Of a stretch of 64,000 nucleotides of DNA, positions 4,201-64,000 are shown piece after piece (within the stretch, counting starts at the first letter, position 1; every line of letters begins with the position of its first letter). The notes below the pieces were generated by a model. That model was given only the letters and a program-made list of their open reading frames with translations. It did no database searches and was not told the DNA's origin. Origin of the DNA: Paramoeba atlantica. Its lineage: Eukaryota; Protista; Discosea. The stretch spans positions 1 to 64,000 of the forward strand of contig CDRNVI010000154.1 of assembly GCA_977017575.1 (NCBI GenBank), in the 5' to 3' direction. Position numbers and translations under genes: made by a program.

Positions 4201-6925
4201 AAACCCACAGTACAGATGTGTACAGTGATGATGATAATGATGAGATGGTGCTTCTCAGTATGCCTCCTTCTGATTTTACTCAGAGTGATGGTTCTTACAC
4301 ATCTACATCTTCCTCTTGTTCCTCTTCTAGTTCCTCTTCTTCTCCAATTGTTAATCCTGCTCAAGCTGCTGCAGCCCCTGATTCTGAAATTCTCCCTCAA
4401 ATGACAGAATTAGATATGAAGGATGAAGAAAGTGAAGGAACTGAAAATGATTCTGCTGACAAAAATGAACCTGAATTGCCAATTGACCTCGATAATTATG
4501 AAATGTTTGATTACCCATCAGATGATCATGATCCTAACTCTTATGACCCTGCAGACCAATCTGCATCTCCTTACTCTTCCTCTACATACAACTCTGAAAC
4601 TGATCCTGAAGTTGATTTCAATCTTGTTACTCAATCTCAACCTGATGATGAAATTAACATCTCTGAACCAAATGAATCTGATGATGCAGCCAAAGAAGTA
4701 AGACACTCTGCTCGCTTCCAAGACCCTGACTACCAACATAGCGCCATTGGAAAAGCGTTCAGTGCCCTGAAAATACCTTGGAATATGTTTGGTAAACCTG
4801 ACTGTGGTTACAAAGATCTTGATTTCCTTGACTATGCCTTCCATGCTGACCAAGTTGTTAATGACAAAGTTTTTTTTTTTAAGGTTCAGACACCAGGTGC
4901 CATTTATTAGAGTTAAAAAACCATCTCTGGGATGGAAAAGAGGGGGGAAAAAAGGGGGGGGAGAGGAAAGATAAATTAAGAGTTAGATCCAAAGATCTCT
5001 TCAGCATGGGATGCATTGGAGTTTCTTTACCAACTTTAGTTCTCACTAAGGGGTCTGCATTTGATTGTTTGCCTTCTAAAACCAGGGAGTGAATTCGGTT
5101 TGGAGGTTTCTATGAAGTTAATTACATTCCTTCGAAAATCTTTCTTGATAAAGCTCCTCACCAGATTGCTCTCTTGGGACTGATGGAACCATCCTTGGAT
5201 ATCTTTAGTAATTATTACAGGGAAAATTAGAGCATTCTCAAGAGCAGTTTGGGTTGGAAACAAAACATGGGGGGTTGTCACTGTGTTTCCTTGGAATTTC
5301 CTTATGTTAATGACAAAGTTACCCCTTGATCCTACAAGCAAGCCACTCATTCAAATGAAAAAAAAGAATAGAAACAAGCCTGCAAAAGAAAATATAATGC
5401 TCATATTGAAAATAAAACTTGGGAATTGGTGCCACCTCCTCTGAAGTTCCCCAAGGATGGAAAAAAACACATTATTATGCAAGGCCTGTGGCAATTTCGA
5501 ATTAAGACTGAAAATGGTGTAATATCCAAGTTCAAAGCTTGATTTTGTGCTAATGGTTCTTGTGTAAAATATAGTCTTGCGAAAGATCCCAATTTCGACC
5601 AAAAAGATAATTATGCTGGAACTGCAACCACTGAATCTCTCAATTTGACATTTGCTATTGCTGCTATGTTTGACCTTGATGTGAATTCTGGAGATGTCCC
5701 AAGTGCCTATATCCAAGCTGACATTCCTGATGGCGATATTGTTTATTATGTCACTCAACCCAAAGGTTTTGAAGATCCTGAATATTCTGAATATCTCTGT
5801 CAATTGAACAAAGCTCTCTATGATGTGCCAATTGCTGGACAATGTTGGAATCTGACTTTTCGAAAATTTCTTATTGAAGAGCTGCAATTCTATTGTCTGA
5901 CTGCTGATCCCAATCTCTACATTTGTGTTGAACCTGACAGAAACTTCTGTTTATTTCCAACTGTTGTTGATGATAATTTGGATGTTTGTACTTGTCCAAA
6001 GCTTTGTGAAGAGATTTACTCCAAACTGATTGAAAGATTCAAGTGGAAGCCCAGCGGAAAATGCTCCTGGTTCCTTGGTTGTGGTGTGAAACAAAATCAC
6101 AAAGAAATTTCTCTCAATCAGCATGCCTTCCTCAACAATTTATTGGAGAGTTTTGACTGCCACAAAATAAGAAAGAGTGATACTCCTGCCATGAGTAAAG
6201 TTCTGCCTATGCCTAAGCCTAATGAACCCCCTACTGATTTTTCCTATGCAAGTCTTGTTGGTTCTCTAATTTGGTTGATGAAAACTCATCCTGATATTTC
6301 ATATGCTGTTTCCCAATGCTCTCACTTCTTGAATACCCACACTGAAGATTATGACAAAGCTGCTCTGCAAATTCTAGGTTATCTTGCCAAATATTCTGAT
6401 TATGAATTGATATTTCCTAAATCCAAATCTGAGACTAAAGAACTTGTGATTTCTGCCCAAGCTGACTCAAGCCATCAAGATGTTACAGAAAACAGATCCT
6501 CATTTTACGGTTTTGCTATTTTTGCAAATGGTTCCCCCATTTCCTGGTGTTCCAAGAAATCTCCTCAAGTTTGTTGGTCCAGTTGTGAATCTGAATACCA
6601 TGCCCTTGCTGAAGCATCCCGTGAATTGAAATTTGTTGATAACATTCTCTCTGAGTTGTGCATCCTGTACAAAAGACCTTTCTTGCTCCAATCTGATTCT
6701 GAACCTGCAATGGCTATTGCAAAGATTCCCCATGTAAACCAAAGAACTAAGCAAATTGAAGCCTTTGATCATTACACAAGAAAAGCATTGCAAGATGGCT
6801 TGATTGAATTGGATTATGTGCCCACTAAAGATAACCTTGCCGATATTTTTACAAAACCCCTTGGACTCAATGTGTTTACACCTCACCGGAATAATCTTAT
6901 TCATCCCCGTTGCTCTGCGAATTAA
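1285..6925 (+). pseudogene. Copia-A gag-pol (stops, frameshifts, LINE insertion)
   Basis: Zinc knuckle (Y/C)FRCGATSHIVKGC, protease LVDSAC, integrase WHNKLCH...CTAC, CDGAQEF, ENGVAE; RT GDVPSAY, TVVDD; RNase H SSCESEY, ADIFTK. Confidence 0.93.
4872..5304 (-). mobile_element. 5'-truncated LINE family 1 insertion (3' end) in Copia-A pol
   Basis: Matches 23620-24048 in reverse with a poly(T); 16-bp TSD TGTTAATGACAAAGTT at 4856-4871 and 5305-5320; the empty site is seen in Copia-A copy 2 near 48000-48016. Confidence 0.95.
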
Positions 6926-12037: not shown

Positions 12038-12463
12038 TTTTTTTTTTTTTTTTTTTGAGGCAGACTTTATTCAATTAGTAGTTCTTAATCTAAGTCATTT
12101 GAATTACATTAAATTATGTTTGTTTTTAACCTCTAACAAGAGGTGAAGTTTTAAACTTCAGCTTAGTTCAGTCGGTCTTTATGCTGAACTTTAGAACTTC
12201 TGCAAGTTCAGGCTGGAGGATGTACATCAGAAGGGAGAATAATCCAAAGCTCCTTCCAAGGGAATTTATTCTCAACTTTTTAGCAGACAGGGCTGAGATG
12301 TAACCTGTTTCGATTTTCACACTTCTTCAAGAGCTCCTCACTCCAATCAAATCACTCTACAACACCAGAAAAATTTTCTATAATATCGAAAAACTGGGAT
12401 TTAAACTCACCCCCCCGAGGTTGGACATAGTCGAATTTACAACTAAACTACAGGCACCAACCC
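12038..12463 (-). mobile_element. SINE-A, full length (~425 bp)
   Basis: Poly(T)...GGCACCAACCC; 18-bp TSD TTTGCAAGTCTATTTATT at 12020-12037 and 12464-12481. Confidence 0.93.
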
Positions 12464-46096: not shown

Positions 46097-46525
46097 GGGT
46101 TGGTGCCCGTAGTTTAGTCGTAAATTCGACTATGTCCAACCCCGGGGGGGTGAGTTCAAATCCCAGTTTTTCGATATTATAGAAAATTTTTTTGGTGCTG
46201 TAGAGTGATTTGATTGGAGTGAGGAGCTCTTGAAGAAGTGTGAAAATCGGAACAGATTACATCTCAGCCCTGTCTGCTAAAAAGTTGAGGATAAATTCCC
46301 TTGGAAGGAGCTTTGGATTATTCTCCCTTCTGATGTGCATCCTCCAGCCTGAACTTGCAGAAGTTCTAAAGTTCAGCATAAAGACCAACTGAACTAAGCT
46401 GAAGTTTAAAACTTCACCTCTCGTTAGAGGTTAAAAACAAACATAATTTAATGTAATTCAAATGGCTTAGATTAAGAACTACTAATTGAATAAAATCTGC
46501 CTCAAAAAAAAAAAAAAAAAAAAAA
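46097..46525 (+). mobile_element. SINE-A (young)
   Basis: 18-bp TSD ATGATCTTCAGTGTGGGT at 46079-46096 and 46526-46543. Confidence 0.95.
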
Positions 46526-55144: not shown

Positions 55145-56608
55145 TGTAAATGAGGCTCACAAAACCACCTCTGAAAAAACGAAGTCAAGAACTCAATCCG
55201 AATCAAAAAGCATGAACACATCCAAATCATCACATGTTGAAGAAACAGAGAGAAGATCATGGGAGAGGTTTGGAACAAACAAAACTTGACTTAAACTTAA
55301 GTCTCTTCCATCCATGAGGATTGAACCAGTTCTGTGTTTCTCAACAGGTAAAGCAGAGCCATTTGCTTGGGTTATTGATTCACCAGGGCCAGCAGCATTA
55401 TGTTGGATCATGTCAGGGTTGTTTGTGAGGGTAGGAAAAGCACTAGAATCAACAATCATGTGGCGAAAACCATCAGCAGTGTGAAGAGCAACAGAGTCAT
55501 CAGTGACATCCAAAAAACAAAAACCATCTGTGAGTTCATCATAGTGCTCATCAGTTTGTTGCTTATCAAGAAGAAGATCTTGGACAAGCTTGAGGAACTC
55601 CTCAGTAGAAGGTTTGGTGTAGAAGGCCATTTTGCAGATGCCAGTTATTGCAAATTGTGTGAGAAATGCTTCACCAACAGAGGTCTGGGGCTTTCCTTGC
55701 TTCTTTCTTCGACATTCATCCTTCCAGTGACCAGTCACCCCACACCAGTGGCAATGACCTTGATGAACAGTTGAACCATCAGGATGTTGATCACCAGGTT
55801 TGAATTTCTTTCCAGTTCTCTGATGTTTCTCCTCCTTTGCTTCAACCAACAAACCAACATGTGGTGGGAATCCAAAACTGGATTCTTTGCCATATTTAGA
55901 CAGAACTTTTTCTTCAAAGTGTGCCAAACTATTGACCAAATCCTCGAAAGATAAATCTTTCTGATATTTGAGTGTCTTTATGGGTTGGAACTCAGGACCA
56001 AGACCTCAAAGAAGAAGAGCCATCATACAGTGTTCTGAAACAGATTCATCATTCTCAGTAGATTCTATGGTGAGGGTCATACTTTGGGATACATAATCAT
56101 TGACAATTTTATTCTCCTTCTTTTTCAAAGTCATCAACTCATTTGTGAGATCCAGCAAAGATGCCATTGTTTTTTTGTTTTTTTTTTGGAAGTAGACTTT
56201 ATTCAATTAGTAGTTCTTAATCTAAACCATTTGAATTACATTAAATTATGTTTGTTTTTAACCTCTAACAAGAGGTGAAGTTTTAAACTTCAGCTCAGTT
56301 TAGTCAGTCTTTATGCTGAACTTTAGAACTTCTGCAAGTTCAGGCTGGAGAATGCACATCAGAAGGGAAAATAATCCAAAGCTCCTTCCAAGGGAATTTA
56401 TCTTCAACTTTTTAGCAGACAAGGCTGAGATGTAACCTGTTCTGATTTTCACACTTCTTCAAAAGCTCCTCACTCCAATCAAATCACTCTACAGCACCAG
56501 AAAAATTTTCTATAATATTGAAAAACTGGGATTTGAACTCACCCCCTGGGGTTGGACATAGTTGAATTTACGACTCATTACAGAATTTTTGTATGGTGCC
56601 AACGTGTC
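55145..56608 (-). pseudogene. Ty1/copia family C gag-protease fragment (split by SINE-A)
   Basis: TLAPYKNSVMASLLDLTNELMTLK...GLGPEFQPI; CHWCGVTGHWKDEC; IVDSSA; VLFVPNLSHDLLSVS. Confidence 0.85.
56170..56575 (-). mobile_element. SINE-A, slightly 5'-truncated
   Basis: Matches consensus up to TTTACGACT; short CATT duplication. Confidence 0.9.
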
Positions 56609-56684
56609 AATATTTGATTGGTTAAAAAATAAATTGAACTTTTTTTCGTTTTGTTCTCCATTTTTGATTCTAGCAACGAAAGGG

Positions 56685-57795
56685 AATGAGAAACTGCCAA
56701 AATGAACACCAAAAAAACCTCCAATCTCATTAGATGAAATCATGGAGATTGATTTCATTACTGAGAAAATTCAACAAACGAAAAAGAGGAAACAAAAAAC
56801 CATTGAGAAGCAAAAAAAACGCCGAAAAAGAGGAGTGGAAAAAACACAGCAGCCGCTGCTGATGGAGACCATTCCTGTTGATGAAGAGAGTTTCAATTTG
56901 AATGAGACAAAGTGATGGATGAACTCCATGATTCTTCCTGAATTTGAAAAGCGACTTGATTTTGCCTTGAAGAAACGAATTCGATCTTTTCGGATTCAGC
57001 TACCATTGCCAAAACAAATTTTCTGCTATGTCCAACCCCAGAGGGGTGAGTTCAAATCCCAGTTTTTCAATATTATGGAAAATTTTTCTGGTGCTGTAGA
57101 GTGATTTGATTGGAGTGAGGAGCTCTTGAAGAAGTGTGAAAATCGGAACAGGTTATATCTCAGCCCTGTCTGCTAAAAAGTTGAGGATAAATTCCCTTGG
57201 AAGGAGCTTTGGATTATTCTCCCTTCTGATGTGCATCCTCCAGCCTGAACTTGCAGAAGTTCTAAAGTTCAGCATAAAGACTGACTGAACTAAACTGAAG
57301 TTTAAAACTTCACCTCTCGTTAGAGGTTAAAAACAAACATAATTTAATGTAATTCAAATGGCTTAGATTAAGAACTACTAATTGAATAAAGTCTGCCTCA
57401 AAAAGAAAAAAAAAACAAAACAAATTTTCTGTAAGATTTTTTGTGAACCATTGAAAAAATTTGAAAAAGTGAAGTTTCAAGTCAATGAATCAGGACAATG
57501 TGCTCGAATCTGTTCTCAAGACAATTTAAAAAAACTGGATTCTTGCTTTTTGAACCGTTCTGAATGGCAAACCAAAAAGATTCTCTTGCAAAGTTCTCGC
57601 GGCAATATTTTTTTAAATGAAGAGGTAAATATCGTTCTTCATCATTGGATTGAATTTGATGTTATTCAAACTGATGAAAATTGAATAATCAAGTGTGAAT
57701 CTGAGTTGATTTTAAAATTTACGAAAAAAAAAAGTCAATTTGAATGCTGTGGAATCATTGAAGTTACAAATGCATCTGGCTTTCATTGCACTTAA
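56685..57795 (+). pseudogene. ORF-X: unknown protein of ~235 aa after SINE removal, basic N-terminus, TGA interruptions
   Basis: One frame ATG56685...TAA57795 once the SINE and one TSD copy are removed; internal TGA at 56703, 56913, 57682. Confidence 0.6.
57026..57415 (+). mobile_element. SINE-A, 5'-truncated
   Basis: 16-bp TSD CAAAACAAATTTTCTG at 57010-57025 and 57416-57431. Confidence 0.93.
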
Positions 57796-58056
57796 AGGAA
57801 ATTATTTGTTGAATTATTTTGAAACAAAATTAAATTTATTTTACAAAAAAATCTTGAAAAAAATGAAACTATTTTTTCCATTGTTAGTAAAATGTTGAAA
57901 AAAAAAGGGGAAAAAATTTAATTAGTAAATGAAAAAACTAACTTTTTCAGTTCGTCAAGTTCTTGCTGCATCTACCTTTGATGTAAAAGAATTTGATTCA
58001 TCTGAATTTTGAAAAAAATGAATTAATAAAAAATATTAATTGAAAAAGAGAAATGT

Positions 58057-60470
58057 TCAAATCCAAAAAAAAAATACTTGAGTTTGTGAGGATGTGTTAT
58101 TGCCACACACTGTTGATAGTTGGGGATTTTGAAGTGGTTGTGGGTTTGCCACCACTGTTGATTGATACATTGGTTGTTGAGCCAATCCATAAATTTGTGA
58201 ATTGCCATTTTGTTGAAATCGGATTTGGGGTGAAGGATTGAAATTTTGTTGGAATTGTTGGGGTGATTGAATAGAAAGTATTTGATAGGAAGTTTGGTTT
58301 TGTGGAACTGGTTGGAAATTGTAATTTGGTTGGGTTTGAGAAGATTGAGGAAGTGGGAGTTGAATTATTGTTTGTGGAGTTGAAAATGTTTCATAAGAAG
58401 TTTGTTGGGTTGTCATAGTTGGTTTTGTTGACTTTGTCGTTTTGTTGGTGAGTGGAAACACTGAACTGTTTTGTGTGTGTTTTCTGATTGTGAATAATTG
58501 TAAATTATTTGTTGCCCTTTTTTGTACAAAAGAGGTTTTGTTCTTTGGATCCATTTGTGGGCAAAAGAGTATAAACTTTCTTTTGTTCTTTTTGGCTTTT
58601 GGAACACATTTGATAAAAGACATTGAACCAAGCTTGTTCTTTCTTTGTTCTTTGTTCTTGTTCTCTGTTCTTGTCTCTATCTCCATACTATTCTGTAGAG
58701 GACTCAACTAAGTTGGTTCTTGTCGAGGAAAAAATGGGTTGGATTGAATTTGAATGACTTGAGGTATTGGTGGTGGTTGATTTTGAATAAAAAGATAGGG
58801 GTTTGTTGCTCCTTCTTTGAATGGAATGGGGGTGGAATTTGATTGAAAAGACTGAAGTGGCAGTTGTTGAATTATAGATTTGTTTCGATCTATTGGATCA
58901 GAGGAAGTGGAATTAGAGTGGAATTGTTGAATATGGTCAAGTGTTGGTACATTTGAAATCATTGGCTCAAAAGTTAGTGGATTGGTGTTTAATTGTGATT
59001 GTTTCATTTTTGTTGAAGAAGAGTGGAGTATTAATTGACTGGAGACAGGTTTTTCAGGTTGTAAGGATTGGTTAGTTTCAGTTGGTGAAGGAGATTGTTG
59101 AAGTTCTGGTGATTGGGGAAGTGGGGAACCCTGTGGAGATGAGGTCACTGGTAATGAGTGATCAGTTTCCTTATTCGTGTTGGCTTTCTTTTGCTTTTTT
59201 TCATTTGGGAGGGAATCGAAAATGTAATCTTCTGAATGGTTGTGTCGTGTGGGACGCAGGGAGGGTTTTGGAGTTTGTTTCTTATTATTTTGAGGATGTG
59301 CAGTCTGAGGTCGCTTGGGGATCATCAAGGGAAGAGGAGAGGTTTCTCGGGCTGATTTTTCCTTCCTCTTGTGCTTTGGCATTTCCTTTCCTTGCTGAAA
59401 CTCCTTTGAGGCTTTTTGGTTGGTTGATTTTTGCCAAGGGAGATGACAGTCAGTGTTCAAGGTCTTAATGAAGAGGTAATCAGAACTTGGAAAAAGAGAA
59501 TCCACTCTGTTCAATTGAATCTTTTCTTTAATCAACAGCATTGAGTGAACGAGTTCAAAAACATCCCTTGGATTGAGTAGTTTGGAGGGGTTCAACTTCT
59601 CTAAAATCGCTTGGTTGGTTGCGGGGAAATCGTCTTCTCGAATAAAAATGAAAACTTCATTCAGCAATGAATCAAGGAGTTCTTTCTTACTCAGAACCAG
59701 CAAATAATCCTTTAGAAGTAAAAGTGTGCACGGAGTTAGTGATGTTGATGAATCTCATGGTTCACCACAAGAATTACTTCTAACGAAAAGGTCCCCTTGA
59801 TTTGGAAAGGGTAAGCAGAGTTGGAGCAAGCAGGAATATCCCTGTTTCCCCTGACTACAGAGGGTTTCAACTTGACTGACAAGTGGTTTCTTTTCGTCGA
59901 AGATAAGAGGCCTCAAAAGGGGAGGGAAAGTTTTGTTGCTTTGCAAATTCTGTAATTTTCCAGGATCCAAATACCAAAAGGAATCTTCTTCAAAGACCTC
60001 TTCTCAAATCCAGAACTGAGGGTAAGTTGAAGACTCACCAATTCCTGAGCTGATTTTCCAGCAAACTGATGAAAAAAAAGTAACTTCCTTTTTTGTTTGT
60101 TCACTAAGGTTGAAATATTTTTTTTTCTCGTGGTCAATTTGAGGTGAGTTTGTGTCCACTTTTATTGTGGTTTCAAAGGTGGGGGAGACTCATGCCAACC
60201 ACGATGTTCGCTTCAAAAAATCCACATAGGAACCACCACAATAATTTGAGTATCTGACGTAATCTGGGCAAAATGCTGTGTTGCAATCGAAATAATTGAA
60301 CCCCTTGGAAATATCAGAGACTCCAACGAGATAATTGGTGACGAGTTTGGTGTTTTTTTCAATTTTCGATTTTGTAATTAAACTGAAAAACTAACCAGAG
60401 CAACAATCAAGAAACCCCAATAATGAACTGAACCATTTTGAATCTCAGAATTGCAATATAAACACTTCAT
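58057..60470 (-). pseudogene. ORF-Y: ~770-aa unknown protein, Cys-rich N-terminus, Q/P/S/T-rich C-terminus, probable intron 60395-60304
   Basis: MKCLYC...HYWGFLIVAL, GTTAGT...TTCCAAG 92-nt intron, then one frame broken only by TGA at 60192, 60006, 59757 and TAG at 58710. Confidence 0.6.
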
Positions 60471-60528
60471 TGTGGAAAGGAAAAGAAAATAGAAGTGGAA
60501 AACTGAGGGAAGAAAGGGTCGAAAGATC

Positions 60529-61073
60529 TTTTTCACAAAAAAACTTTTTTTTTTGTGGGGAAGCAAAAATACTCTTTTTTCATTTCAACACTTCAAAAAG
60601 TTCAATTTGAGGAACTTTTTGAATTTTTTTATTGTTGAAAAATTTTAAAAAGGAGTGGTGGCTAAATATTTCAAATGAATTAAACTCTCTCTGAAAAGGA
60701 TTTTTTAGTTTTATTGAAGGTTTAAAACTTTTTCCACAAAAACTTTTTTTTTTGTGGGGAAGTAAAAATACTCTTTTTTCATTTCAATACCTCAAAAAGT
60801 TCAATTTAAGGAACTTTTTGAATTTTTTTATTGTTGAAAAATTTTAGAAAGAAGTGGTGGCTAAATATTTCAAATAAATTAAATTCCCTCTGAAAAGGAT
60901 TTTTTAGTTTTATTGAAGGTTTAAAACTTTTTCTACAAAAACTTTTTTTTTTGTAGGGAAGCAAAAATACTCTTTTTTTATTTCAACACTTCAAAAAGTT
61001 CAATTTGAAGAACTTTTTGAATTTTTTTGTTGTTGAAAAATTTTAGAAAGGAGTGGTGGCTAAATATCTCAAA
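60529..61073. repeat. ~200-bp tandem repeat x2.7 with internal hairpins
   Basis: Units start at about 60534, 60735, 60934; units carry TTCAAAAAGTTC-N8-GAACTTTTTGAA (one mismatch in unit 2) and CACAAAAA...TTTTTGTG-type stems. Confidence 0.9.
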
Positions 61074-61126
61074 CACAATTTGTGGGGCAGGCAGGAAAGG
61101 CAAAAAACTTGAGGAGTTTGAGAAAA

Positions 61127-62397
61127 ATGGGCCGCTTTCAAAACGCTCGTGAGATTTTACAAGAATTGAACATTTCTTGGGAAAACTTATCAAAGCAAAT
61201 CCAATTGAAAATTTGAGATTTAAAAATTGAGGGAAGTGAAGGGAACCATGGTGTTCTTGAGTTTGAAGGAAGTGGGGTTCGTTTTCGAGGCCATCCTCTT
61301 GCACCTGATCACATGATTGCATGTTGAATGCATCCTACTTGGATCATTACTTTCAGGAGATTCCCTCCGAAGCTCAAAGAAAGGCCTTCATCTCCTTTGA
61401 TTTTGCTTTTTTAACAAAAGGATTGAAAATCCTTCGGTTCGATGATGAGTCAGAAGGGGGGTTAAATAATGAATGGGATCGGAAAGGTTGGCTTCGAATC
61501 TATTCAGAATTGAATGACAGACCCAAAATTTTGGAACAACTTTCAGATCAATCAGGTGGGTTTTTAAAGCACTTGGATTTATTGGTTGAGGAAAACCTTT
61601 TAAATGTTGTTTCTGGGGATTTATACATTTCATCTCAGAGTGGTCATAATGACATGTTTTTTTGCTCCCAGGTAGCTTCAGAAGAGGAGGTTTACAAAAT
61701 GTCAATTCTTCAATCTTTGCTTCTCTCTTTGAACCTCCTCCTGCCAAAATGTAAGCAGAATGCTCAGGGGTGGAACCTCATAGCTCTTGGGCTTCACAAA
61801 ATTCAAAACTCTTTAATGAAATGGGCTCAAACTCAACATCTAACGGACAACATGAAGAAAATTCTTTCATCCCTTTTAATTGCATATGAGATAAGAGAGT
61901 ATTGCTTGATGAAGTGGATAACTGGATTAAAAAAGAATTCAAACTTTTTTGTGGAACAGATTGGGATGTGCAAGAAATTTCAAACAGCTTGGAAGGAAAC
62001 AGGAAAAGATATGAGAGTTCAACTTCCAATGAAATGTACTCAACAAATTTGGATTGGAGGAGGCTGTGGAACCCTCCTCCACAAAGATGCTTCAAACTTC
62101 GGTTTGTCATTTTGCCAATATTTGGGTTTCAATTGGAGGGAAAGTGATTGTGGTGTTGGTCTCCCCGAACTTCGAATCCTTTGAAAAAATTCACCAGAAT
62201 CTGCAATGGCCATTCGTGCTTGTCATTACTTTCACATGAGTTTGCCACTTGATTTAGGGTTGAAAATGATGGGTGCGTCTTTTGTTAATCTTAAAAAAAA
62301 AATCAAATCCTCTGAAAAACTAAATAAAAGGAAAGCAACACACAAACCAAAGCCCTCAAAAAAATTGGTTGAAGTGAAATTGATAAAAAACTTATAA
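61127..62397 (+). pseudogene. TET/JBP-family 2OG-Fe(II) dioxygenase (decayed)
   Basis: HKDASN at 62080-62097, GVGLPEL, HMS at 62233-62241, KMMGASF at 62263-62283, basic tail, TAA 62395-62397; TGA at 61214, 61325, 62182 and one frameshift near 61320-61415. Confidence 0.75.
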
Positions 62398-62400
62398 ATT

Positions 62401-64000
62401 TTATTTCTCATCACCATCTTCTTTCAAAGAAATTTCAGTTTTGAGATCATACATTCATGTGAGGAAAAGGTCTTCCTGAGCAGCTCAAATCAATTTTGGG
62501 TCTGTCACCACTTCACTTCTTCAATTTAAATTCATTTGAGTTGCTCGAATTTCTTGTGGGATATTCAAAGAGGTTTGATATTGATTTGCTAAAGAATGGC
62601 TGTATCAAAAACAAAGTCCAGTTGTGAGGACTTTAGCGTTCAGATTTGCAGAACCTCGTTGGCTACTCTGATAGAAGTGCATATGATCCAAGTAGTGGAC
62701 CTGCTCCTCAGCTTCTGCTGCCCAAGGTCACAAATTCCCAAACTGACAATATGTATCCACTGCGTGAGCTTCCAGAATGTGGAAATAAATTCACCAGGTG
62801 GAACCCATCTCCCCTCCCCAATCCGTGAAGCTTTCCTTCCAAGAACCAATTTTTTTTTCAAAATTAATGGTGACTGCTTCACAATTTGACCCTTTTGGGG
62901 GGTCACTTGTCAGCATTTGAAAACATTCTCAAAAGGTAACCTACAATGATGTTGTGGATGGTCGATTTGGATTGCAATAAAAGATTCTTTCGACATTCTC
63001 CAATACTTGCCACATTTGAGTGCCTGTGTATCGCCCCAATTTCCAATTTCCATCATCACCAACTCGGAATCGAAAAGGAATTTTACATTTAGAAAACACA
63101 AAGACCAGCAACTTCTTTTTTTTTTTTTGAGGCAGACTTTATTCAATTAGTAGTTCTTAATCTAAGCCATTTGAATTACATTAAATTATGTTTGTTTTTA
63201 ACCTCTAACGAGAGGTGAAGTTTTAAACTTCAGCTTAGTTCAGTCGGTCTTTATGCTGAACTTTAGAACTTCTGCAAGTTCAGGCTGGAGGATGCACATC
63301 AGAAGGGAGAATAATCCAAAGCTCCTTCCAAGGGAATTTATCCTCAACTTTTTAGCAGACAGGGCTGAGATGTAACCTGTTCCGATTTTCACACTTCTTC
63401 AAGAGCTCCTCACTCCAATCAAATCACTCTACAGCACCAGAAAAATTTTTCCATAATATCGAAAAACTGGGATTTGAACTCGCCCCCCCGGGGTTGGACA
63501 TAGTCGAATTTACGACTAAACTACGGGCGCCAACCCAAAAAAAGACCAGCAACTTCAATGATTTGGTCTTCAATGAGTGATTCTTCTCAAATCGTTCTTT
63601 TGTGGAGCTTTTCTCATATTCTTCCTCCAGATGAGATTTCAACAAAAGGAAAGAGGAAGGTGAAGAAGAAGAAGATGAAGAGGAAGAGGAAGAGGAAGAG
63701 GAAGAAGATGAAGATGAGGAGGGTAAGGAAGATGAAGGTGAGTTCAATGATGAGGATGAACATGAAGAGAAATCTTGAAAGTCAGCCCACCACTTTGCTA
63801 TTAAATCAATTCTCAAAATTAAATGAGCTGAGTTCTTCGGTATCTTTTACTTACAAAAGTTTGATTTCCATTCGTCCTGCAATGACTCACTGTTCAATCC
63901 AACCATTTTTCCTCTTCTCAAAATTGTGTATTCTCGTTAGAATATCAATAGAAAAGCAAGAGATTAAGTTCATCATGGCATTTCTGTTGAGACCTCCCCC
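62401..64000 (-). pseudogene. RAG1/Transib/Chapaev-like DDE transposase, C-terminal part (runs off the window)
   Basis: CKIPFRFRVGDDGNWKLGRYTG...IYFHILEAHAVDTYCQFGNL*PWAAEAEEQVH...FYQSSQRG; 7 TGA and 1 TAG in 62401-63115; SINE insertion; Ser-rich insert at ~63650-63770. Confidence 0.75.
63116..63536 (-). mobile_element. SINE-A (young, CpG-rich)
   Basis: 16-bp TSD AAAGACCAGCAACTTC at 63100-63115 and 63541-63556. Confidence 0.95.

Follow-up and report, generated by a model that had tools for sequence, protein, structure and literature searches.

A degenerate DNA transposon in Paramoeba atlantica, probably from a recently active inverted-repeat family that carries a TET/JBP-fold dioxygenase

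The distal part of a 64,000-nt stretch of DNA from Paramoeba atlantica (contig CDRNVI010000154.1, positions 1 to 64,000 of the forward strand), referred to here as the window and the source of all coordinates given without a contig name, is occupied by a mobile element that encodes a predicted dioxygenase of the TET/JBP type. Positions 56576-64000 represent a single copy of a multi-copy family, further members of which are found on contigs of one ENA assembly (L001-L005 and L008-L011). Full copies are 7.26-7.46 kb in length; the window copy is truncated on the right because the window ends at 64000, and the right end of the element would be reached approximately 1.2 kb further on. Four genes, X, Y, the dioxygenase gene and T, are arranged along the element in the order X(+), Y(-), dioxygenase(+) and T(-), as had been described in an earlier sequence-only reading of this DNA. 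X and T face inward from the ends of the element, and Y and the dioxygenase gene diverge from a block of 199-bp repeats in the centre. The same reading was right to place the right end beyond 64000, but the left end lies at 56576, rather than at 56685, where the block had been taken to begin.

The termini of the element are 48-bp inverted repeats, which are in perfect register (5'-CATTACGG...CCGTAATG-3'). The left repeat, at 56576-56623 on the plus strand, starts with CATTACAG in the window copy, the family form being CATTACGG. These 48 nt recur in inverted orientation at the right ends of the copies in L001 (5165-5212), L002, L003, L008, L010 and L011, and all nine of the ends that were compared begin with CATTA. 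The copy in L010 is complete at 7260 bp, and its left and right ends are identical at 46 of 48 positions. The reference element put together from L001 is 7462 bp long, and the difference in length reflects the presence of one 199-bp repeat fewer in L010. This block, which repeat analysis places at 60528-61126 in the window between the divergent Y and dioxygenase genes, consists of three tandem 199-bp units in both the window and L001 and of two in L010. It may act as a promoter region shared by the two genes.

Gene X (56577-57684, plus strand) is made up of two frames of approximately 112 and 120 codons divided by a fixed TGA, corresponding to positions 5497-5835 and 5839-6198 of L001; the window copy has also suffered one CGA>TGA stop and the insertion of a short interspersed nuclear element (SINE) at 57021-57418. 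Gene Y (58057-60444, minus strand) has approximately 690 codons and is broken by four premature stops in the window, but is intact in L001 (6581-8632, encoding 683 aa). Its product comprises a structured N-terminal third followed by a long tail rich in P, Q and S. The dioxygenase gene (61321-62397, plus strand) is 93% identical to an intact frame of 332 aa in L001. Gene T (62410-64000, minus strand) is represented by its C-terminal 56% or so, equivalent to residues ~294-677, before being ended by the window edge. It forms a single frame of approximately 650-677 codons in L001, L008 and L010, which begins about 300 bp inside the right end of the element. When all frames in the window copy and in the intact L001 and L010 copies were searched, none of the four genes gave a Pfam match. 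The family likewise has no match to Ulp1, and no relative or domain could be detected for X or Y using Pfam or, in the case of Y, the sequences in the PDB.

The proposal that this block is mobile DNA is borne out by its distribution. At least ten copies of the element are present on other contigs of the same assembly, and a protein search with the dioxygenase frame retrieved nine close relatives, which are 79-95% identical to it and belong without exception to a single ENA assembly. The L001 copy matches the window at 96-97% over 56591-64000, save for the insertion of two SINEs and, within Y, of a further 303 bp. Three left ends and six right ends stop matching at the identical nucleotide, with flanks that are mutually unrelated. 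Furthermore, the copy in L010 splits a retroelement gene, paralogues of which are uninterrupted in L005 and L008, and the joined flanks of this insertion are the same as these paralogues except for one extra A in an A-run. This implies that the ends are true insertion boundaries and that 0 or 1 bp of the target was duplicated, a value derived from this one informative locus. The other full copy, in L003, is uninformative in this respect because its left flank has been rearranged and does not run collinearly with the loci that are paralogous to its right flank. The block is a mobile unit with precise ends.

Some resemblance can be seen between the right flanks of two independent insertions, which start with AGTTGAG (L003, from 13608) and TGGTTGAG (L010 low side, below 8174); this may reflect either a target preference or chance.

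The alternative that these genes are no transposon at all, instead being a host gene cluster copied by segmental or tandem duplication and later pseudogenised, might draw on the lack of a clear target duplication and on the occurrence of two head-to-tail units in L001. It is largely refuted, and we consider it very improbable, as it does not explain why homology breaks off at one and the same position at all nine ends although their flanks are unrelated, why these ends are 48-bp inverted repeats, why a retroelement gene left whole at two loci is interrupted at a third, or why copies are nested amid Copia and LINE (long interspersed nuclear element) debris. The double unit itself occupies positions 1-12792 of L001 (ENA contig ctg3419c, 17.6 kb, flagged as circular). 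The two units are 99.5% identical and are separated by a G+C-richer spacer of 283 bp, and the left end of the second is missing its first 15 nt. The arrangement may be a tandem array, a circular DNA or an artefact of assembly.

The extent of decay was assessed against a CpG-aware consensus built from ten copies. This contains open frames of 691 codons for Y, 337 for the dioxygenase and 316 and 253 for T; by comparison, the longest frame in 500 shuffles of the same consensus was 210 codons, with a median of 106. Ten or more copies differ from the consensus at 1-7% of sites, the figure for the window copy being 3.0%. Almost all of the differences in the window copy (179 of 186, or 96%) are of the C>T or G>A type, with CpG sites accounting for 65%. 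The premature stops in this copy number 15, comprising ten CGA>TGA, three TGG>TGA and two TGG>TAG changes, such that 13 are TGA, in line with the earlier description of frames broken mainly by this codon. Nine of these stops fall in T (eight CGA>TGA and one TGG>TAG). The window copy is dead.

When all copies are pooled, C>T and G>A changes make up 1563 of the 1704 differences, occurring at a per-site rate of 0.32 within CpG compared with 0.035-0.054 in the remaining contexts, a difference of about sevenfold. The decay of the whole family is thus almost exclusively the result of cytosine deamination. Outside CpG, C>T and G>A changes (644) also outnumber all other substitution types combined (141) across the copies in the window, L001-L005 and L008-L010, which implies that deamination, or methylation, is not limited to this dinucleotide. 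The composition of the window, at approximately 35% G+C with a CpG observed/expected ratio of 0.0-0.44, shows an excess of TG and CA.

The abundance of in-frame TGA raises the question of whether it might be a sense codon in this organism, leaving the genes intact. Two public gene calls, P0002 and P0005, do translate TGA as W, and TGA outnumbers the other stops in each of the six frames. However, the sites concerned vary between copies, TGA at one being replaced elsewhere by CGA, TGG or CAA, the last of these a product of CGA decay on the opposite strand. As the same positions are CGA or TGG in other copies, TGA is not read as a sense codon. Moreover, long frames are obtained from young copies when the standard code is applied, and the surplus of TGA is accounted for by the excess of TG and CA together with the depletion of CpG, so the likelihood of a reassigned code is negligible. 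The W residues in P0002 and P0005 come from the gene caller reading TGA as Trp on some contigs, which has generated artificial W-rich N-termini.

Recent activity is indicated by the existence of copies only 1-1.5% divergent from the consensus and by the 99.5% identity of the tandem units in L001. Overall, we consider it likely, with good confidence, that the window contains a dead copy of a recently active family of inverted-repeat DNA transposons carrying a TET/JBP-fold enzyme, a judgement that is made separately from any assignment of T.

The identification of the dioxygenase as a member of the TET/JBP group, which the sequence-only reading had also made, is supported principally by structural comparison. 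A model of the protein generated from an alignment with AlphaFold has a mean predicted local distance difference test score (pLDDT) of 81 and a predicted template modelling score (pTM) of 0.83. The first 21 matches retrieved from the PDB by Foldseek are all NgTET1 of Naegleria, CcTet of Coprinopsis or CMD1 of Chlamydomonas, with E values of 5e-9 to 1e-5. In comparisons with VIA-align, 16 TET/JBP entries score at Z 19.5-15.0, headed by NgTET1 (19.5), CcTet (19.2), TET2 (16.2) and CMD1 (15.6), whereas FTO and AlkB reach at most 12.1. The element enzyme has the same double-stranded beta-helix as NgTET1 (4lt5), CcTet (7vpn/8jkk), human TET2 (4nm6) and CMD1 (7cy4), aligning with them at Z 15-19.5 over 225-276 residues, and has in common with them the HxD...H triad and a basic residue about ten positions after the second His. 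It differs from them in being only 9-15% identical in sequence and in having no match to the Pfam Tet_JBP model. The ESM Atlas likewise places the protein among Tet_JBP clusters, which make up 70 of the 100 nearest, with a score of 0.96, and both the AFDB clusters and an Atlas shape search are consistent with this fold.

The HxD...H triad is intact in young copies, and H253, D255 and H304 show little or no variation in two alignments of homologues. Relatives share the pattern G-R-G-T-x2-H-x-D-x2-N-x-G-L-S, with the second His in H-M-S and a K or R some ten residues on; this basic 2-oxoglutarate-binding position, which lies in a G[LF][RK][MI]M motif, is K or R across relatives and K in the element. 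The frame in the window retains the iron-triad residues, with the HKD ligands at ~62080-62088 and the second His (HMS) at ~62233, and has acquired a TGA from TGG between them, at 62182-62184. No Pfam match, including to PF12851 (Tet_JBP) and PF20515, was obtained with the frame in the window, with the intact protein of L001 or with any of ten distant homologues, and searching the sequences in the PDB with a profile of the dioxygenase gave nothing beyond chance matches. On the modelled structure, the protein represents a divergent subfamily of Fe(II)/2-oxoglutarate enzymes with the TET/JBP fold, and either 5-methylcytosine or thymine is its putative substrate.

The N-terminus of this protein may extend further upstream than the frame annotated here. 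An extra T nucleotide in four of nine copies brings an upstream frame into phase with that of the dioxygenase, the codon separating the two being TGA or CAA. This alternation can be explained by an ancestral CGA, which would be expected to decay either way, and the product may thus be about 65 residues longer, with the extension starting from ~61127.

Searching 1.84 billion representatives exhaustively with phmmer yielded 27 relatives, and the 61 patterns matched in a scan of metagenomes with the dioxygenase alignment included none that could be confirmed. The distant relatives (31-44% identity), which have kept H253, D255 and H304, are on short metagenome contigs from the Joint Genome Institute (JGI); two of these, L006 (2003-2785) and L007 (2190-3032), have a G+C content of 41% and a CpG observed/expected ratio of 0.4-0.6. 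Further paralogues among the 27 are in ENA assemblies, one of them (P0018) being confirmed in the same assembly as the element. A paralogous dioxygenase with 41% identity, at L012 6623-7941, is found in this assembly in a different setting, with no relative of T, X or Y beside it. Frames are present upstream of it (4847-6081), and one on the same strand contains the strings FFDNGSNFH ... EPGEGKTALD, which recall the tail of a DDE transposase, and has no Pfam match. The locus is probably another TET-carrying family.

The association of TET/JBP genes with transposons is established in fungi. An earlier link with KDZ and Plavaka elements was reportedly described by Iyer and colleagues in 2014. 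More recently, TET/JBP genes have been catalogued within complete DNA transposons of 11 lineages, in rusts, mushrooms and Pezizomycetes, with no mention of protists or Mucoromycota (PMC12730594, Kojima 2025). These lineages include Plavaka, TET+ EnSpm and ESTA, the transposases of which resemble RAG1 by HHpred (PMC12730594). Hence the statement in the sequence-only reading that no link between a TET/JBP gene and a RAG1-type transposase had been described is outdated. The same survey characterises the CMCT group of transposons by 5'-CA...TG-3' termini, a target duplication of 2-5 bp (TA in the case of ESTA), an H(3-4)H motif preceding the final catalytic E, and a C(2)C motif located after the second D and ahead of H(3-4)H (PMC12730594).

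Gene T is the candidate transposase of the element described here. It and the dioxygenase gene are convergent neighbours, arranged alike in every copy that spans both. Its tail, at ~62700-62800, contains the motif YFH-x4-H...W-x2-E-x2-E, which was read by inspection of L001, L010 and the consensus and not from a statistical test. In full, YFH-ILEA-H is followed by 13 residues and then by W-A-A-E-A-G-E, placing the two glutamates of E-x2-E 17 and 20 residues past HILEAH. The spacing YFH-x4-H-x13-W-A-x-E-x2-E is one that we take to be that of the RAG1 ZnH2 region, with H937 and H942 as zinc ligands and E962 as the glutamate. When 140 residues of the tail were compared with the ESM Atlas, the nearest clusters were unnamed eukaryotic ones from Mucoromycota and diatoms (0.93), and the sole named families in the top 100 were DUF4218, the tail of CACTA transposases (0.82), and RAG1_ZnH2 (0.81). 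Both the CA...TG termini of the element and the H(4)H before the glutamates fit the description of the CMCT group (PMC12730594).

A substantial number of results nevertheless weigh against reading T as a transposase of this kind. The Atlas scores of 0.81-0.82 are under the threshold of the tool and count as a lead only. No piece of T has a Pfam match at E values up to 5-10, including to the models for RAG1, Transposase_21, KDZ and Plavaka, and phmmer searches of the PDB did not retrieve any chain of RAG1 or Transib, which was also the case for a 56-residue query built around the motif. No CxxC is present in the T frame of L001, L010 or the consensus, in which just adjacent CC can be seen, and no catalytic D, D pair can be assigned. 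The longest uninterrupted stretch of T (L010 9698-10309) gave an AlphaFold model with a pLDDT of 37, which is unusable. The target duplication of 0-1 bp, from the one empty site, falls outside the CMCT range of 2-5 bp. Two stops are fixed in all of the copies that cover them, raising the possibility that T was disrupted prior to the expansion of the family. On each of the short metagenome contigs L006 and L007, the gene that lies downstream of the distant dioxygenase, in convergent orientation, is unrelated to T. The N-terminal 249 residues of T were assigned to no family by either the ESM Atlas (best score 0.59) or a search of PDB sequences, and a word-based protein search with the second piece of T returned same-genome copies only. 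KDZ and Plavaka transposase models and CxC domains likewise matched no piece of T, X or Y (E up to 5-10).

The two fixed stops, a TGA at residue 246 and a TAA at residue 345, are located within the donor-like strings AA/GTGAGG and T/GTAAGT, each followed by AT-rich sequence. It may be that they mark introns rather than decay, in which case part of the T protein could be concealed. Splice models produced several frame-preserving donor-acceptor pairs, with no convincing acceptor among them.

These observations bear on a rival account, in which the family is non-autonomous, T, X and Y being cargo or regulatory genes or T a broken relic, and is mobilised in trans by a transposase encoded elsewhere. 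It would explain the stops fixed in every covering copy, the failure of any search to recognise T, X or Y as a transposase, and the fact that neither D, D nor C(2)C could be placed in T; the existence in the same assembly of a 41%-identical dioxygenase in a different context also favours it. However, introns account for the two stops equally well, given the good splice-donor strings in which they lie, and T maintains approximately 650 codons in one frame with just one or two stops beyond the fixed pair in L001, L008 and L010, which are 1-1.5% divergent. Its tail has the H(4)H...E motif, with no named neighbours other than DUF4218 and RAG1_ZnH2, and no element has been seen with the same ends and a different transposase. 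Mobilisation in trans is regarded as unlikely. That T is itself the transposase, as a distant relative of the EnSpm/Transib/RAG1 (CMCT) group, is suggested by the motif and the termini, and is given a probability a little under even.

A closer relationship, with T as a Transib or RAG1 transposase proper, is not supported, and the RAG1/Transib-like label that the sequence-only reading gave to T is unproven. T is similar to these transposases in its putative length of ~650-700 aa and in the RAG1_ZnH2 neighbour in the Atlas at 0.81, which is a lead only. However, it matches neither the Pfam RAG1 models nor the PDB, which holds structures of both RAG1 and Transib. Transib elements have termini composed of a CAC-initial heptamer and an A-rich nonamer, and generate a 5-bp target duplication (PMC1131882, Kapitonov & Jurka 2005). 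By contrast, the ends of the element start with CAT in place of the invariant CAC, no nonamer is found at positions 30-38, and the target duplication is 0-1 bp. Furthermore, the element is 7.3-7.5 kb long with four genes, compared to the single gene and 3-4 kb of Transib. What remains of the original claim is the motif and the sub-threshold lead.

The element also resembles the fungal TET transposons, especially ESTA, TET+ EnSpm and Plavaka. In both cases an inverted-repeat element with CA...TG termini carries a TET/JBP gene beside a putative transposase with H(4)H shortly before a glutamate, the repeats of the host show methylation-type decay, and an escape from methylation-based silencing is the proposed role. 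The differences are that T is not recognisably like any described transposase, that no C(2)C has been found, that the duplication is 0-1 bp, that there are two extra genes, X and Y, and that the dioxygenase belongs to a subfamily undetected by Pfam. Since TET-carrying transposons, RAG1-like ones included, are already known from fungi, the possible extension here is to a non-fungal host, and the possible novelties are the profile-invisible TET subfamily and the unusual target duplication of 0-1 bp. The fullest version of this proposal, in which a cut-and-paste TET/JBP family exists outside fungi, in a protist, and combines a new profile-invisible TET/JBP subfamily with a very divergent CMCT-type transposase and a duplication of 0-1 bp, is doubtful as a whole.

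By analogy with the fungal elements, the enzyme is probably carried to resist silencing by DNA methylation. The host would methylate copies of the element at CpG, and the enzyme encoded by the element would oxidise 5-methylcytosine on or near it and so delay silencing, as proposed for the fungal TET transposons. The 48-bp ends would be bound by a transposase that is either T or supplied in trans. Transposons with their own demethylation-type enzyme represent the clearest case of a mobile element countering silencing by methylation, and have so far been documented in only three fungal lineages. The near-intact copies in L001, L008 and L010, a mutational record dominated by deamination and the presence of a paralogous dioxygenase together constitute a natural system in which to ask whether such an enzyme protects its element in cis. 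The enzyme also adds to the TET/JBP group a branch that current sequence models overlook. The link with RAG1 and Transib, the most striking part of the original claim, is not established here and is no longer unprecedented.

The remainder of the window is likewise rich in mobile DNA. No cut-and-paste transposase was recognised between positions 1 and 56000, which contain nested elements of Copia type (RVT_2, Pol_BBD, SH3_retrovirus) and LINE type (RVT_1, Exo_endo_phos), and a search of the whole window with Rfam found nothing. A SINE-like repeat of approximately 400 nt (56170-56575, minus strand; repeat families D2/D7/D8, inverted pair I1) adjoins the left end of the element on its outer side. 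Its tail is marked by a T-run at 56171-56188, and it possibly has a 4-nt CATT duplication. Two further copies are present in the region of the element, one being the insertion in X at 57021-57418 and the other an insertion in T (63113-63541, minus strand) that is not shared by L001, L008 or L010. No tRNA was identified by ARAGORN in the two SINE copies that were scanned (56100-57500). The repeat recurs at around eight more places in the window, for example at 12043-12281 and 46279-46517, with a tail consisting of a T- or A-run and variable 5' ends. The 303-bp insertion in Y (58407-58709), which is found in the window copy only, is 97% identical to L004 13945-14247, where the corresponding sequence is located beside a chromovirus-type retroelement.

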